DNA of 60,443 nucleotides, filler included, from Dugesia japonica (Eukaryota), in the NCBI GenBank assembly GCA_001938525.1. It is 6 parts of 6 records of this genome, joined end to end, with 100 filler letters (N's around TTAATTAATTAA, not from the genome) between each part and the next. Parts side by side here need not be neighbours in the genome. Positions count along the whole stretch, not along the records: positions 39,026 to 47,681 come from MQRL01594406.1; 5 more parts are not named here. The stretch is one strand, 5' to 3'. A program made the translations under genes and the position numbers. Below the pieces are notes generated by a model that was not told the DNA's origin, ran no database searches, and saw only the letters and a program-made list of their open reading frames with translations. The first letter of the stretch is position 1; each line of letters starts with the position of its first letter. Below, piece after piece: positions 39,026 to 47,681 of this stretch.

Positions 39026-39601
39026 ATTATATATAATAACTAGAGCGTTTTAGACAATTTCACATAGTTTTTCAAGATTTTGTTGGTTGTTTAACTTTTA
39101 AGCAAATGTAAATTGGTTCAAATATAGATATTTTGTAATTTTCACGATTACAACAAATAAAATTTTTTTCGTTATTATTGTTTAACTTCAAAACCAAATC
39201 GTTATTTTCACTATTGTAATTTCAAAAATTATTTTCGAAATTTTAAAAAAATTTGGCTAATTTGAAATATTTTCAATGAAGTTTCTATTATTATTATTAT
39301 TATTAATTTTGAAACAATTTTTAATTTTACTATTAAATTTTTTAAAATTATTTATATTATAGGTCGAGTGTCGCAGATATTTTTTTGATATATAATGCAA
39401 AATTCTGTGTACCAAAATTAGTATAAATCCAATAATAAAAAAATTGTCGAAAATTTAGATATTTAACAAAAAATTGAAGAAAATATATTGTATCTAAGCT
39501 CTTTAGTTTAATTGAAAATTGTAAATAATTAACATGGAAGTTCATGTATACATAAAATTTGTTTAAATTTTTAAATTATTTAAAAACATTCGCCATTAAA
39601 T

Positions 39602-41690
39602 ATGACTGCATATTTGCCACCAAATTTGTTGGCGCTTTTTGCAGCCAGAGATCCAATTCCATTTGCTATACCTATAGAACGTCCTAAACATCATCGTCCA
39701 TTGCCATATACTGGTATTGCTCAGTATGTAAAATTATTTGAAGATCCTTCCGAAACTCCAATTCCACCTAAAGTAGAAACTAGAGAGGAAAAACGAGAAA
39801 GAAAGGTATATACAACAGTTTTTAGGTACTATTTTTCTATAAAAATTTTTTAGAGAAAAGAAAAAGCTGAACAAATTGCTTATAAAGTTGAACAGGATTT
39901 AGCTCTTTGGAATCCAAATGAAATCCCAAGCGGAACAAAGGATCCTTATAAAACTTTATTTGTTGCTCGAATTGTTAGTATATTTTAAAAAATTTATATT
40001 TTATTAAAGTATTGTAGAATTATGATACCACAGAAAACAAAATTAGAAGAGAATTCGAAGGATATGGTCCTATTAAAACTATTAGAATGGTAAAAAATGC
40101 GATGAATAACAAGCCTAGAGGGTACTGTTTCATTGAATATGAGCATGAAAGAGACATGCATGGTAAGTATAATCTCACATTCCATGAGGAAATAACGGTT
40201 GATTGTTTATTAAATTAATGTTTAAAATATTTAAAATAATAAATTACATTTTTGAAATGTGGTTGAAGATACGGAAACATTGGTCAATGACATGATATCA
40301 ATATTCGGACGATTCTGAAAGATATTTGGTATTTTAAAGCAATCTATTTACCATTTGCAGAACTTACAAGTCATGTGTAAAATTTGATTAAAATTATTGA
40401 TTAGCACAATTTTAGTAAATTAATTTTAGTTAAAACTGCAGCAAACTTGTTATATAAACTTTTTGTAGTTCGACTTAACGTTGACTAGTTACATTATTTA
40501 AAATAATGTAATATTTATAATTTTTTATATGAATTATTGTTAGTAATTTTAAATCGGAAACTATTGATTATTAATGAATAGAAAGAAATCGATATTTGGT
40601 CGTAAAATGCAAAGTTGATACTATTTTATCATTTTTAGCGTTTATTACCACCAAAAAGTGTTTATAAATATTGAAAACACATGATTATGTAAGTTTTGGA
40701 AATGCTTTATTATCGGTTTGTATTTATTTATTTAATCAACTTGATCAAGAATTAACAACACGTTAATCAGCATTGTTACCTGGTAAGTTTTTTCAACGGT
40801 AAGGCTTGAAACTCTATTTTTTACTTCCTTTGAGATCTTTTAAAATATTTCTATTTTCTTTAGATGCCTTTGAGCCCATATGGCCTATAGAGCATCCCTT
40901 GAATAGCTTTTCGTAAAAAATCGAGACTATAGGTTTGTACACATGGTAGGTGCTGATTAATATAAATAAAATAATGAATTCTGTTTCTTTTACTTAATTT
41001 GCTGGAGTTCTGAAATTCTTTACTTTTTCAGCGGCATATAAGAATGCTGACGGTAAGAAAATTGACGGTCATCGGGTTCTTGTTGACGTAGAAAGAGCAA
41101 GAACGGTTCGTAATTGGAGACCAAGACGATTAGGTAAGAANNNAATTGAGAACTTGATTGATTTAATTTGAAATATAAGGTGGAGGGTTGGGTAATACGA
41201 GAAGAGGTCCACCAGAACAGAATTCTAAATACACAACTCGAGAAGAACCTCGAGAACGAGATTCTGATCGGCGCAAACGAAGCAGGTCACGAGAGAAAGA
41301 TCGACGAGATCGAGATAGAGATAAAGAAAAGGAAAAAGAGAAAGAGAAAGATAGAGGAAGAGAAGATAGAGAAAGAGATCGTGATAAAGAACGTGACAGA
41401 AAGAGAGATCGAGATCGCGATCATGAAACTCGTGGCGATCGTACCAAAAGAAAAAGTAACCATTTTATCGATTATTTCATCTGTGTATTTATTTTTATCT
41501 TTCAGGGAGTAGATCAAAGGAACATCGCAAACATAGAAGTAGGTCACGTGGTAAATCAAAAGACAGATCGACGGATAGATCTAAAGATAAGAAACGTAAG
41601 AAGGATAAAGATCGTGAAAAGGAAAGAGAAAATGGAGTTGTTTCGGCTGCAATTCGTCAGTATGGAGAATACGGGGCGGACATGGAATAA
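39602..41690 (+). CDS. SNRNP70: U1 small nuclear ribonucleoprotein 70 kDa (U1-70K); 6 exons: 39602-39805, 39854-39973, 40018-40162, 41032-41133, 41180-41455, 41506-41690; 343 aa
   Basis: Manual splicing at GT-AG sites gives an uninterrupted 1032-nt ORF. It has the N-terminal [30 protein letters not shown], then [17 protein letters not shown] (RNP2), [17 protein letters not shown] (RNP1), [38 protein letters not shown] and an RS/RD/RE-rich tail ending in TAA at 41688-41690. Introns are 48, 44, 869, 46 and 50 nt. Confidence 0.97.
40639..40804 (+). other. Candidate poison (PTC) exon with three alternative 5' splice sites in U1-70K intron 3
   Basis: Acceptor ctattttatcatttttag|cg ends at 40638. 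Spliced from exon 3 it reaches an in-frame TAA at 40665-40667. Donor-like sites follow at 40689 (tat|gtaagt), 40783 (ctg|gtaagt) and 40799 (acg|gtaagg). Confidence 0.6.
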
Positions 41691-43395
41691 ATATGTTGTT
41701 TGTATAAGTATAATATTATATAAGTTGTTCTGTTTTCACTTTGTCAGAGATTGGTTGAGATACTTTGTCTGAAGATGTTTGTCGTTGTTTGTATGCTATC
41801 ATATGTCGTTAGCATTTATATGATTTGCATTTGATTAATGTTATGGCTGCAAACTTTAACTTTGTTTGGTACATGGCATCTTTATGTATGTGTTAACCGC
41901 CGGTTTTTTTTTTNNNNNNNNNNNNNNNNNNNNNNNNNNNNNNNNNNNNNNNNNNNNNNNNNNNNNNNNNNNNNNNNNNNNNNNNNNNNNNNNNNNNNNN
42001 NNNNNNNNNNNNNNNNNNNNNNNNNNNNNNNNNNNNNNNNNNNNNNNNNNNNNNNNNNNNNNNNNNNNNNNNNTATAAATTCACATTCAAGGGAACGTGT
42101 ATTTTTGCTGGCTAGATAGTTATGATTTATTTCGTTTTTTTAAATTATTATATTGTGCATGATTATTTTATCCTAAAAACAAAATATACTATTTAGATTT
42201 TATATGAGTAATAGTAGAAGTTTTAACTTTTTTAAAAATGGTTTTTGGAATTATTTCAGTATCTAAGAATTACCAATAATAATTAATTTGGGTATATGTT
42301 AAAACAATTGAGTGTATATAATTAAAAGTGTTTATTTTTTATCGTATGAGGTAGATTAATTTGATAATTTTTGAACTTTTTAAAATAAGATACTTTTATA
42401 TAGTCAAAGAGGTTTTTACATATTATTAACAAGTTTTGAGTAATTTAAGATTCAATTGACTTTATTTACCAAAATTTCCCTAGTAATAAGTGTTTGATTT
42501 ACCTTTTTGTCGACAATACAGATTTACATAATAGGAGGCCACAAAAAACACTAATGAAATTTTTGAAACTTATTTCATGCTTGACATGCTTATGCAGTAT
42601 TTCGAAAGCTCTTGGTTTCCGTCATCACTTTCCTCTCAGTCTTTGTTATTTTGTACTGGGGCTTGGATAAGAGTAGTTTTCCATGTTTTTGTCACTCGTA
42701 TCAATCGATAAGCTGATGATTTCTGCACGCTTAATCACTAATATGTGACAATATGGAGGTTTTTTATTCAATGGACCTTGCAAAAATGATGACTGTATGC
42801 AGATTGTGACTATAATGTGATTGATGGGAGATTTTTCTTACAATAAAACCTCATATCACTTCAGTTACCAGCTTTTATATATTTCATCGGAGCATTCTAA
42901 TGATCTTTTTCCACAACAATCGGCGTTTCATATTTTATTCTGCTTTCCATCGTAACAATTTAGTAAAAGCATTTCATATTTCAACATACAATTTATAATC
43001 TATTATCGGTTTTTCATATTTCATTTCACTCTGCTTTTCATTATAGGAATTTATTATCAACATTTTTTCTACTTTACAAGTTTCATCATAACAATTTAGT
43101 TATTAGCTTCCAGAAATAATCTAACATTTAAAAATGATTTATTAATTTGCGTTACTATTGTATCACTGGGACGTTTTAACAAACAAGAGAATTTAAAATT
43201 CAAACGGTTGATTGCTTTTCGCATTCTATAAAAAGTTTATACGCATTCAACCAGGACGATAAATTTTAAATAAATTATAATTTTTAAATCAAAATTATCA
43301 GGCAAGTAAGAATTGACCGGGATGTAGCTCGNAAATTATGAGACAAGTAATTTATAAATATAAAATGATAAAAAACTGTTGTAAATAATGATATA

Positions 43396-44686
43396 CAGGG
43401 TGCGCTAGTAGAATTGGCGCCATTTTCTAAATGTAAAATCTTATAAAAATGCATTTATATCATTATTTTTATTGATAAATTTAATGTGATCAATGCTTTA
43501 TTCAAAAATGGAAATATTACAAAATTTCAACAAATTTCAGTGGGTCGAAGAATGTAAAAAAAAGGTCATAATGCATGCCACGTACGCCGGAATGACCAAC
43601 AATAATATTTATGAGAAATTGAAGTCACCTATGAGAACAATTCAAAGAATCAAGAAGCAGTTGGTTGATTCATACTTTAGCGTCAAACTGGTTGGTAACN
43701 GAAAAAATCACAATCGAGCAGAACAGCGAGTTAGAAACCAAAAATTGATTGAATATGTGAAACAGCTCGTTGACTATGACCCATCTATTTCAATGCGTAA
43801 GATTTCTTGACAGAAAGACACCTGCGACAGCACCATAAGACTCTGTGTGGAAGAAGATATTGGCTACAAGTCATATAAAATGAGGAAGGGACAGATTCTA
43901 ACAAAAACATTGAAAATTTGACTTCTGTTGAAGTGTAAGAAACTTTTGGAAAAGATTAAACATCCACTGAAGCCGAAGATATTGTGGGTTTTTTCGGATG
44001 AGAAATTCTTTTGTCAGGATCAGGCACACAATAAGCAAAATAACAGATAGCTAGCAGTGAGTCCTGAAAATGTGCCCAGAGTCATGAAAACCAAATTTCC
44101 AGCACATCTGATGATTTTTAGTGTTGTTAGTAGTGAAGGTAATGTTATGACTCCACATTTAATTGCGGAAGGTCTTAGGGTGAATCNNNNNNNNNNNNNN
44201 NNNNNNNNNNNNNNNNNNNNNNNNNNNNNNNNNNNNNNNNNNNNNNNNNNNNNNNNNNNNNNNNNNNNNNNNNNNNNNNNNNNNNNNNNNNNNNNNNNNN
44301 NNNNNNNNNNNNNNNTGTCAGAAAACTTTTTTGACCATGTTACTCCTCTAAACTCTCCTGATTGTAATCCGCTTGACTATTACGTATGGGGCACAGTTAA
44401 AGCGATAACAAATAAGACTGCCTGCAATAACAAAAACAAACTGCGAAATAGAATATGCCAAGCATTTCAAAATTTGTATCCTGGCGTTGTTAAAATGTCC
44501 TGTTTTCGTTTCAGCGGTCTGGTAAAGGTTGGAATTTATACTGATGGTGATTTTATTGAGTAATTACAACCTCTGGTGTTTAATATTACTGATATTTGTA
44601 AAATTTCAAATAAAAGTTCAAATTTGTAGTTTTTAGAGATATTTTCTTCACTGCACTTTTCGCGCCAATTCTACTCGCGCACCCTG
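43396..44686 (+). mobile_element. Full-length Tc1/mariner-superfamily transposon, probably maT/DD37D-like, with decayed transposase
   Basis: 25-bp TIRs CAGGGTGCGC(T/G)AGTAGAATTGGCGC at 43396-43420 and 44662-44686 (1 mismatch), flanked by TA on both sides. FSDEKFF and SPDCNPLDYYVWG motifs are present. The second catalytic Asp probably falls in the N gap. Confidence 0.93.
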
Positions 44687-44759
44687 TAGTTACAATATTT
44701 TAATATTTCTTCGTTTTAATATTATTAGAAATTGTTTTAATTTTGATTTTTAATAAATA

Positions 44760-46520
44760 TATTATATTTAAATGAAGTTTGATTATGAATAGAGAGTAAC
44801 TGGCGAGAGTTATTCGAATGTGTTAAAAGAAGACCAAAAAAGTCATGAGAGACAATCTCAAAACCAGCCATGAATTAGTTTTAAAACCAATAATAATGTA
44901 AGATTTAAAAAACCAAGAACATAAATGTCAACGTATCAGAGAAAATACGATCGGATGTCACAACCGGAGATTACAGAAAACAAAACACATTACAGAAAAC
45001 CGACAGTTTCGATGAATCAGCTAGCAAGATGTCATTTTATCAGATGTAGAGGGTTATTAGAACTACAAGAAGAAAAAATACGAGAAGGTCAATGTTGTTG
45101 CAAAGAACATGGGCATATGCGTTATCAATATCTGTTAAAAGACAATTGTTTGATTTGCGGAAAAGCTCCACACAATTTCCGGAAATGTTATCTTGTGCAA
45201 AATCAATCTAATAGCAGAAATACTAAAATTCTAGGCATCCCAGACGAACAAAAGGTACGAACTGACTGAGATGAAAGCTTTAAAAGGCATTATATTATCA
45301 AAGAAAAAACCCAGAACAACTCCGTTTTATACATTTTGTCATTGGAGTTTGCTTAAGAAAGAATAGCCCGAATCAAAAGGATGAAGACAGAAAAGATATG
45401 CATGAAAAAGAAGACGGAAGAAAGTGAAGCTGAGTGGACGTGAATGGGGTAAAATGGAAAATGTTATGGGATTCAAGAGCATCAGTTGCAGTTATGAGCG
45501 AAGAGTACTAGTTGAAACCATCGTTGTTATGTTGTAACGTTATATTAAATGGGGGTATTTTTGAGCAGTGGAGAGAGATAGTTGGGAAGTGTAGAACTGA
45601 GCGTTAAATGGAAGAATAAAGTGAGAGTTATGAAAATCATAATACCTAAAAAGATACAATCGCAATTTATTGGTGGGATAGATGAAATGAAAAGTTTCGA
45701 AATAAAACTGACAGAAGTTAATAATATTGAAACTAAATGTTTGAAAAGAAACTACTTCAACGAATTTAGAAAAAATTATGCATTAAATGTCTTCAAAGAA
45801 ACAAATAATAAAGATCTAAATAATTTAATTTCGATGTTTGGTGAAATATCCATGGCATCTAAGTTTGATATAGGACACACAAAACAAGTGGTACACGAAA
45901 TAAAAGTAATTGGAGATCCAATTGTTCAACATCTCCGAAAACAACTGATGCACTTGGAAAAGAAGATTGATGAAATGATACAAAATTTAATAAGTATTTA
46001 AGTAATTAGCAAATATAAAAGGCAGTGGAATACACCTTTAGTAATTGTTGGAAAGAACAAGGGTTCAATAAGAATGTGTCTCGATTATCGACAACTAAAT
46101 ATAATTCCTGAACAAATTTCACTTCTGATACCAGACATCTAGCTATTATTGGATTGCTTAGCATGTGCAAAAATATTTTCTTCAATTGAGCTAGGACAAG
46201 CTTACTACCAGGTAGAATTAGCAGAAAGCTCGAGAGTTCTTACGACATTTAGTATAAAAGAGGGTCAATTTGGGTTCAATCGGATCCCATTCAGGTTAGC
46301 AACGGCACCGGCAACTTTTCAAAAGTTGATGAATGATATGTTGACAGGGGTAATTTTTAAAGGTGTCATCGTATATCTAGATAATATATTAGTTTATGGA
46401 ATGTCGGTCGAAGATCATTATGAAATTTTGAAAAAAGTTTTTAACAGAATCAGAAAATCAAGATTGAAGATAAATCCAGAAAAATTTAAATTTTACCAAA
46501 AACTAATGGTCTTTTTGTGA
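44760..46520 (+). mobile_element. Gypsy gag-pol remnant (Zn knuckles, protease, RT)
   Basis: CLICGKAPHNFRKC; MLWDSRAS (aspartic protease-like); WNTPLVIV..IRMCLDYRQLN; AYYQV..PFRLATAPATFQ..VYLDNILV. Confidence 0.88.
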
Positions 46521-46861
46521 ACTTAACAAAATATACTCAGACAAAATATATTTGACAAAATAATGGTCCAAAAATATAAAATTGGTATGTAAACTGTTCG
46601 TGGTAAAATTAAACAAAAAAGAAAATTGGAGGAGTTTACAAGATATTGTGACAGTAATGCAGGTCCTTCAAATCGAAAAACTTTCAAGATCCCATCATAT
46701 AAATATTTAGATTCGGACATGCTTAAATAGTTCAATCAAAAACAAACAGTAGGGATGTCAATTAACGGTTCAATGTGTACAAATAAAGCCAAACTATTTC
46801 ACATAGCATTGGGGTTAAGTGGACAATTCAATCCTTCATATTTCAATCCAAGGAGAACATC

Positions 46862-47060
46862 TTTTGTCATAATATATTTTGTCTGAATATATTTTCTCAT
46901 AATATATTTTCTCATAATATATTTTCTCATAATATATTTTATCATAATATATTTTGTCTGAATATATTTTCTCATAATATATTTTCTCATAATATATTTT
47001 ATCATAATATATTTTATCATAATATATTTTATCATAATATATTTTGCCTGAGTATATTTT
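46862..47060. repeat. 15-bp minisatellite (CATAATATATTTTCT-like, about 13 units)
   Basis: Directly visible tandem array. Confidence 0.9.
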
Positions 47061-47681
47061 GTTCTACCACCATCCCAGCGTATTGAATTTATTATTGTGG
47101 AATTTACATACATATATTTATAGCTTTTAAGGAATCGATTATGTAATAATGTTCGAGCACTTTAAANNNNNNNNNNNNNNNNNNNNNNNNNNNNNNNNNN
47201 NNNNNNNNNNNNNNNNNNNNNNNNNNNNNNNNGGGTTTGGGGGTTGCGTATGAAAAAAGATCATTTTTTGATGCGACTTAGAGATTACAAACTGAATATT
47301 CGAATATATTTGTGTGTTAGTTGACTATTTGATATTCGAATATTTTTGAACGATACAAAATTATAAAATATAAAAATTCAATCAAAGTAAGCTTTGGAAA
47401 GTTTCAAAGAGTCGCATTTTGAATTTTCGTAATGTGTTTTGTGTGACATTATTTTAGTTGGCTTTTGAAAAATAGTCACAATAAGTAATTGTTATTGTCA
47501 TTAAAAATTTTAATGATTAAAATAAATCGCAATCAATTGTTACTGTTAGATAATTCTGTAACATTCATCTTTGCATTTAAAAATTGAACACTTTTCATTC
47601 TAAGATTTGTTGGGGTTTTATCTAAGTGAGTTGACAAAATCTAGGGTAGTTGACCTAATAAAACCCTTCGAAGAATTTAAT

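Follow-up and report, generated by a model that had tools for sequence, protein, structure and literature searches.

The abundance of U1 small nuclear ribonucleoprotein (snRNP) determines which 5' splice sites are chosen and how well RNA is protected from premature polyadenylation throughout the genome, and given this genome-wide role it matters how cells hold U1 snRNP constant. In human cells, a cluster of 5' splice sites (the cryptic sites A, B, and C of exon 7a in the U1-70K gene, SNRNP70) is occupied by the complete U1 snRNP, which activates an upstream alternative 3' splice site (PMC3798272). Human exon 7a measures about 85 nucleotides (nt) to the third site (184-46-53 nt). The stop-containing RNA is cleared by nonsense-mediated decay (NMD), and the effect disappears when U1C or U1-70K is lost, so that a feedback loop is closed; the loop has been shown in human, mouse, and zebrafish (PMC3798272). 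Here, a stretch of 60,443 nt from the flatworm Dugesia japonica (GCA_001938525.1) was analysed, which consists of six parts joined by filler and is called the window below. The U1-70K orthologue lies on the + strand of the piece at 39026-47681 (MQRL01594406.1). Comparison across species and motif analysis suggest that the autoregulatory cassette known as exon 7a in vertebrate SNRNP70 probably has its orthologue in the 869-nt intron of this gene. The first-pass annotation of the window had proposed an exon 7a-like cassette in this intron, and it knew of no description in such a lineage. The literature search agreed: the exon 7a switch of U1-70K was found described in vertebrates only, and no description from an invertebrate was found in the literature searched.

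A few other systems are related to this one. In Arabidopsis, Golovkin and Reddy reportedly described in 1996 a long and regulated U1-70K intron 6 in the RRM-coding part, whose inclusion truncates the protein. The event there is intron retention, unlike the exon predicted in Dugesia, and the plant gene was compared by description only. To our knowledge, no B/C-like block has been reported in plant U1-70K. The exon structure of the RRM is identical in human and Arabidopsis (Fan et al. 2021). The ENOX1/Enox gene contains an intronic pseudo-5' splice site, which is conserved between insects and vertebrates, is bound by U1 snRNP, and tunes a neighbouring splice choice (PMC13100119). However, this is a single, never-spliced site in another gene, and it silences an essential exon, whereas the Dugesia cassette would activate a poison exon. 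In the U11-48K and U11/U12-65K genes, the snRNP senses its own abundance via tandem decoy U12-type 5' splice sites, which activate an upstream 3' splice site (PMC3798272). This autoregulation belongs to the minor spliceosome, and it employs other genes and motifs than those of Dugesia U1-70K.

The host gene was modelled as follows.
39602..41691, + strand: U1-70K (SNRNP70) orthologue, six coding exons, 343 amino acids (aa), based on the spliced model, Pfam, and the match to a cDNA-derived protein
39602-39805, 39854-39973, 40018-40162, 41032-41133, 41180-41455, and 41506-41691, + strand: the U1-70K exons
40163-41031, + strand: long intron 3, 869 nt, in phase 1, which interrupts the RRM immediately behind ...EYEHERDMH

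Pfam analysis showed U1snRNP70_N on exon 1 and RRM_1 on exon 3, and the gene product has 57-67% identity to animal U1-70K proteins. The spliced model shares 99.7% identity over 343 aa with P0151, a protein from UniParc/MetaClust. The N-terminus of P0151 is FGTRN, which is the usual read-through of a cDNA cloning adaptor, and P0151 was therefore regarded as cDNA-derived; the same species thus provides cDNA support for the productive exon model. Protein searches with exon 1, P0001, and P0151:1-250 were also performed, and apart from P0151 the best matches were only about 57-74% identical. The gene product shares its C-terminal motif QYGEYGA only with Heterobilharzia (schistosome), Echinococcus (tapeworm), and one environmental transcript, which makes a flatworm the likeliest source; the AT-richness and the short introns would fit a planarian.

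The introns of the gene measure 48, 44, 869, 46, and 50 nt in order. The spliced model thus agrees exactly with the first-pass annotation, in which one 869-nt phase-1 intron after ERDMH had been set apart from four others of 44-50 nt. Genomic loci of the orthologues (L001-L010) were examined and their exons mapped; the human sequence used was the two 25-nt morpholinos from PMC3798272. In the window and in 10 other animal loci, an intron was found to follow E(R/K)DMH, with identical codon position and phase (phase 1).
L001, Heterobilharzia (schistosome): intron of 898 nt
L002, Lineus (nemertean): intron of 4910 nt
L003, Helobdella (leech): intron of 1507 nt
L004, Pyxicephalus (frog): intron of 4887 nt
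L005, Exaiptasia (cnidarian): intron of about 4500 nt
L006, Crassostrea (oyster): intron of 2196 nt
L007, Zophobas (beetle): intron of 813 nt
L008, marine metagenome contig (Tara Oceans), probably copepod: intron of about 915 nt
L009, Ornithodoros (tick): intron of about 4340 nt
L010, Eurytemora (copepod): intron of about 2200 nt

The frog gene, taken as a proxy for the human one, has an intron exactly after ERDMH and in phase 1, and this intron contains the sequence targeted by the published human exon 7a morpholinos. The placement of the Dugesia intron as vertebrate intron 7, as made in the first-pass annotation, is therefore confirmed with the frog as proxy. Judged by its codon and phase, the 869-nt intron is positionally homologous to vertebrate SNRNP70 intron 7. 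The assignment of L008 to a copepod is a guess, made because its conserved intronic block (described below) resembles that of Eurytemora. In this contig (1353-2849), the 165 residues before EKDMH are encoded without an intron, and the block is present in the intron after EKDMH. That this is the only long intron of the Dugesia gene, whose others measure 44-50 nt, and that L008 has it with the block after 165 residues free of introns, suggests that this intron has been kept for a reason. A single long intron in short-intron U1-70K genes should not be dismissed as junk or misassembly.

Direct or inverted repeats inside the 869-nt intron were searched for, and none were found; neither was a copy of the intron elsewhere in the piece, nor an Rfam match on 40251-41140 at E up to 1. 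A recent transposable element (TE) insertion, which the first-pass annotation had raised as another origin of the intron, was rejected because of the lack of repeats in the intron and of a second copy in the piece. Many U1-70K proteins in the databases diverge right after ...RDMH, via intron read-through or an alternative exon. For example, P0020, P0025, and P0031 leave the normal U1-70K sequence right after ERDMH and continue with other sequence. P0025 reads through a frog-type exon 7a and the A/B/C sites (..HCMVGIRVCMMGK..); poison-exon isoforms thus appear as 'proteins' in public sets.

Local alignment of the introns across species showed one common short block, and nothing else over the whole intron. 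In the window, this block comprises two sites.
40931..40940, + strand: conserved core AGGTTTGTAC with its GT at 40933, the homologue of site B among the regulatory 5' splice sites by alignment, profile, and morpholino targets
40946..40951, + strand: GTAGGT, located 86 nt ahead of the true acceptor and by alignment the homologue of site C among the regulatory 5' splice sites

The window sequence at 40931-40951 is AGGTTTGTAC-N5-GTAGGT. Site B has the context AG/GTTTGTAC (GT 40933), and site C has the context TG/GTAGGT (GT 40946), the slash marking the splice boundary. The loci of the window (40932), Heterobilharzia, Lineus, frog, oyster, and beetle each contain a single match to the pattern GGTTTGT, 2-12 nt, GGTA[AG]G, and in each case it is on the + strand and inside this intron. 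The leech block has the same pattern with a longer spacer, the tick block is a variant (TGGTTTGTAT...TGGTAAGG), and the two copepod-type loci (L008 and Eurytemora) contain one or two copies of AGGTTTGTAT. In alignment A1, which includes the window and seven other species, GGTTTGT is invariant in all 8 sequences. The conserved bases are GGTTTGT and the GGTA behind it, with free variation in site A, in the spacer, and in the exon body. It was also observed that the L008 intron has two copies of the AGGTTTGTA core (2314 and 2342), in a layout like that of Eurytemora (L010, about 5705).

The two human morpholinos were directed against the exon 7a cryptic 5' splice sites A/B and B/C, and their reverse complements read ...GGTATAAGGGTTTGT and AAGGGTTTGTATCATGGGTAAGATC. 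The frog block differs from these by one or two changes. Because the frog block matches the human morpholino targets, GTTTGT was identified as regulatory site B and GTAAGA as site C. On this alignment, the window sites at 40933 (GTTTGT) and 40946 (GTAGGT) are homologues of human sites B and C. A profile built from the other six species gave its best match in the 8.6-kb piece, with both strands included, at 40928-40950. In the leave-one-out profile searches, the block was the top match, in the right intron and on the right strand, for 7 of 7 species. The pattern AGGTTTGT, 2-25 nt, GGTA[AG]G was met in 8 of 100,000 shuffles of the window intron (8e-5).

A short exon that would end at these sites can be predicted upstream of the block.
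40845..40863, + strand: candidate acceptor of the exon 7a homologue (ATATTTCTATTTTCTTTAG), pyrimidine-rich, AG 40862-40863
40833-40834, + strand: AG of a second candidate acceptor
40864..40945, + strand: predicted poison exon, putative exon 7a homologue, 69 nt via site B (ends 40932) and 82 nt via site C
40914-40916, + strand: TAA that in silico is in frame with exon 3 and would be a premature stop within the predicted poison exon

The predicted poison exon reads 17 residues and then a stop. The TAA at 40914-40916 has two or three exon junctions downstream, and two further junctions are more than 100 nt away. In 7 of the 7 bilaterians examined in detail, site B is preceded, 55-117 nt upstream, by a pyrimidine-rich acceptor, and in every invertebrate examined, translation continued in phase 1 from the preceding exon runs into a stop within the predicted exon. 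The GC content of 40851-40950 is 0.39, which is equal to that of the coding sequence, compared with 0.16-0.30 elsewhere in the intron.

The Dugesia cassette is like vertebrate SNRNP70 exon 7a in several respects. It lies in the same gene and in the same phase-1 intron after ERDMH; its core is homologous to sites B and C; its acceptor is predicted about 70-85 nt upstream; and its inclusion would lead to a premature stop. There are also differences. Dugesia has no site A, and its site C is GTAGGT. The Dugesia cassette is located at the 3' end of an 869-nt intron, 86 nt from the true acceptor, whereas the vertebrate cassette is within the first 0.8 kb of a 3-kb intron. Further upstream, the Dugesia intron contains three consensus donors in a separate array that has an acceptor of its own, and this array has no vertebrate counterpart.

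By analogy with the vertebrate loop, the cassette might act as follows. The complete U1 snRNP, with U1-70K and U1C, would bind sites B (40933) and C (40946). This binding would define the short exon and activate the upstream acceptor AG 40863, and the included exon would bring the TAA at 40914-40916 into frame. The stop-containing transcript would be unproductive, through removal by NMD or nuclear retention. High U1 snRNP would then give less U1-70K output, and low U1 snRNP would restore splicing from 40162 to 41032. The use of the sites in RNA, the decay of the isoform, and its dependence on U1-70K and U1C would be expected in Dugesia japonica from the vertebrate case. The core AG/GUUUGUAU is predicted to pair with the 5' end of U1 snRNA at -2 to +2 and at +5 to +8, with a constant UU mismatch at +3/+4. 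Such a mismatch design could combine weak U1 binding with poor catalysis, as in a sensor rather than a donor, and the binding could hinge on U1C.

Several observations weigh against the homology of the Dugesia cassette with exon 7a. The block is short (about 21 nt), and the E-value of the block profile over the whole piece is just 0.12-0.13. Site C of the window departs from the consensus in being GTAGGT and not GTAAG, and so does the spacer (ACACATG against ATGTGTG). A site A was not found, as the 15 nt before 40933 contain no GT-containing motif like a 5' splice site; since it is also absent from the other invertebrates in alignment A1, site A looks like a vertebrate addition. The choice between the acceptors at 40863 and 40834 is a prediction. 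A truncated U1-70K isoform of the same species was not found in the protein collections searched. Finally, the GTTTGT block was not found in the intron of the cnidarian Exaiptasia, which limits the depth of the comparison: the evidence extends back as far as the bilaterian ancestor, but not beyond it. With these points considered, the sequence evidence still makes it likely that the Dugesia cassette is an invertebrate member of the known regulatory device.

The same intron of Exaiptasia contains two TGGTAAGACAA motifs (L005, 3526 and 3563), which are 37 nt apart. They are identical to the site C context of oyster (GTGGTAAGACAA), without the GTTTGT core. This pair may represent the sensor in a cnidarian form or may be due to chance, and it is too weak to support a claim.

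A second set of splice-site motifs is present further upstream in the Dugesia intron, and this is where the first-pass annotation had located its cassette.
40620..40638, + strand: alternative acceptor of the first-pass annotation, tract ACTATTTTATCATTTTTAG, AG 40637-40638
40665..40667, + strand: TAA after AFITTKKCL if AG 40638 is used
40689..40804, + strand: donor array GTAAGT 40689, GTAAGT 40783, and GTAAGG 40799, consensus-like 5' splice sites

These elements were all found as described there: the AG 40638 after its pyrimidine tract, the exon start with CG, the TAA at 40665-40667 after 9 codons (AFITTKKCL), and the three donors. It might be proposed that they form the working poison exon, with AG 40638, the TAA at 40665-40667, and splicing from donor 40689, 40783, or 40799 to 41032, and that the conserved block is minor or idle. 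This is the strongest of the alternatives, and we consider it unlikely. The upstream sites match the local consensus strongly; the acceptor is like the true one, and two of the donors read GGTAAGTTT or GTAAGTTT. When 40251-41031 was shuffled with its dinucleotides preserved, 0.52 GTAAG were expected, compared with the three seen (P=0.0135); three GTAAG within 120 nt have P=0.0012, and the layout of TTTTYAG followed by at least 3 GTAAG within 30-200 nt has P=0.0002. However, these shuffle tests were chosen after the data had been seen.

Strong 5' splice-site arrays also recur in the same intron of other species. The Lineus intron contains three AGGTAAAT, 29-37 nt apart; the oyster intron contains three TCAGGTAAGA, 32-35 nt apart; and four sites in L008 (2427, 2456, 2477, and 2567) exactly repeat the octamer of its true donor, GTAAGTAT. 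The excess of 5' splice-site motifs is significant in Lineus and L008 and borderline in beetle, and it is not significant in the introns of oyster, leech, schistosome, frog, and cnidarian. The position of the arrays relative to the block differs between species, some lying upstream of it and others downstream. Because the excess is significant only in Lineus and L008, the arrays were treated as lineage-specific, and not as a defining feature.

The upstream sites of Dugesia are located 130-295 nt before the conserved block, and no counterpart of AG 40638 or of the donors 40689/40783/40799 aligns in the introns of the other species. Conservation of the donor cluster, on which the first-pass annotation had set store, was thus not detectable in the aligned introns. 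The GC content of the upstream cassette region is intron-like (0.23-0.29), and the only stretch in common with the experimentally defined vertebrate element is 40931-40951. Most likely, the array at 40689/40783/40799 together with AG 40638 was added specifically in this lineage. It may well cooperate with the conserved cassette, in a two-exon poison path, and not take its place. The distance from 40783 to AG 40834 is 52 nt and that from 40799 to AG 40863 is 65 nt, which is near the 44-50 nt introns of the gene. By intron definition, the upstream donors could pair with the acceptor of the conserved cassette, in which case AG 40638 would start an exon further upstream. The upstream array may provide accessory U1-binding sites, or donors that split the stretch into intron units of the 50-80 nt usual in this genome.

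Taken with the conserved block, the proposal of an exon 7a-like cassette in this intron stands, in that a homologous 5' splice-site block is present. Its location does not, because the block lies at 40933/40946 with the candidate AG 40863, about 225 nt downstream of the sites that had been pointed out. The cassette had also been suggested to be either retained or re-evolved; retained fits better, because the block is shared across bilaterians.

It is also conceivable, with a still lower probability, that the block and the donor array act without exon inclusion. Intronic U1 would then stall splicing and give a detained or retained intron, and the RNA would be kept in the nucleus and degraded, or cut and polyadenylated early. 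In 14 runs from five studies, which were only guessed to be RNA and may be DNA, a fraction of 0.79-0.87 of the sampled words of 39602-41133 was present; most of the intron is therefore present in those runs. In human cells, the 7a-to-8 junction is unseen without cycloheximide (PMC3798272), and 5' splice-site motifs within an RNA, with U1-70K, favour its retention in the nucleus (PMC9074902). On the other hand, the acceptor at a conserved distance and the in-frame stop in every invertebrate favour the use of the exon. Intron detention and inclusion of the exon 7a homologue are not mutually exclusive.

That nothing in the intron is regulatory, the intron being merely long and its motifs due to chance in AT-rich DNA or left over from an old insertion, would agree with the shortness of the block and the weak E-value of its profile over the piece, but it is very improbable given the rarity of the pattern from other species in the shuffled window intron, the consistent leave-one-out searches, the lack of repeats and TE signatures in the intron, and a core that is invariant across animals that split at the base of Bilateria.

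With a common 10-nt core found from flatworm to frog, always in this intron, the circuit would go back to the ancestor of bilaterians. The balance of evidence leans slightly towards the U1-70K poison-exon switch being a bilaterian-wide device more than 500 million years old and not a vertebrate invention, around whose core several lineages (Dugesia, Lineus, copepods, and oyster) have repeatedly added consensus 5' splice-site arrays. Such a bilaterian-wide spread of the exon 7a device appears to be undescribed in the literature searched. If this is true, the block would be among the oldest conserved intronic regulatory elements known in animals. The switch would also be directly testable by RNA interference (RNAi) in a planarian-type model, as compact, RNAi-friendly invertebrates would hold the whole cassette within less than 200 nt.

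The sequences around U1-70K were also examined. A voltage-gated K+ channel gene (BTB_2, Ion_trans) was observed on the opposite strand, beside or around U1-70K, at L001 1-1364, L002 1-12816, and L006 1-33131 (minus strand). Human SNRNP70 presumably neighbours KCNA7. The adjacency of U1-70K and a K+ channel gene in schistosome, nemertean, and oyster may reflect microsynteny of great age; the piece in the window is not long enough to reveal it. The remaining features of the piece are listed below.
46149-46520, 44925-45269, and 45582-46001, + strand: retroelement remnant downstream of U1-70K, as short, separated open reading frames (ORFs)
43493-44563, + strand: ORFs broken by N runs
46799-47113, - strand: tandem repeat reading KYIM(I/R)KYIM...
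41141-41143 (inside U1-70K intron 4), 41914-42073 (just past the 3' untranslated region), 44187-44315, and 47167-47232: N runs, kept unaltered

The retroelement remnant contains an RVT_1 reverse-transcriptase ORF (E 3e-21), and an upstream ORF carries a string of CCHC-like zinc knuckles. The ORFs at 43493-44563 include a ...PDCNPLDYYVWG... string that is Tc1/mariner-like by eye; a Pfam search on them matched no family. The tandem repeat at 46799-47113 is probably a satellite or a TE-internal repeat, and not a gene.

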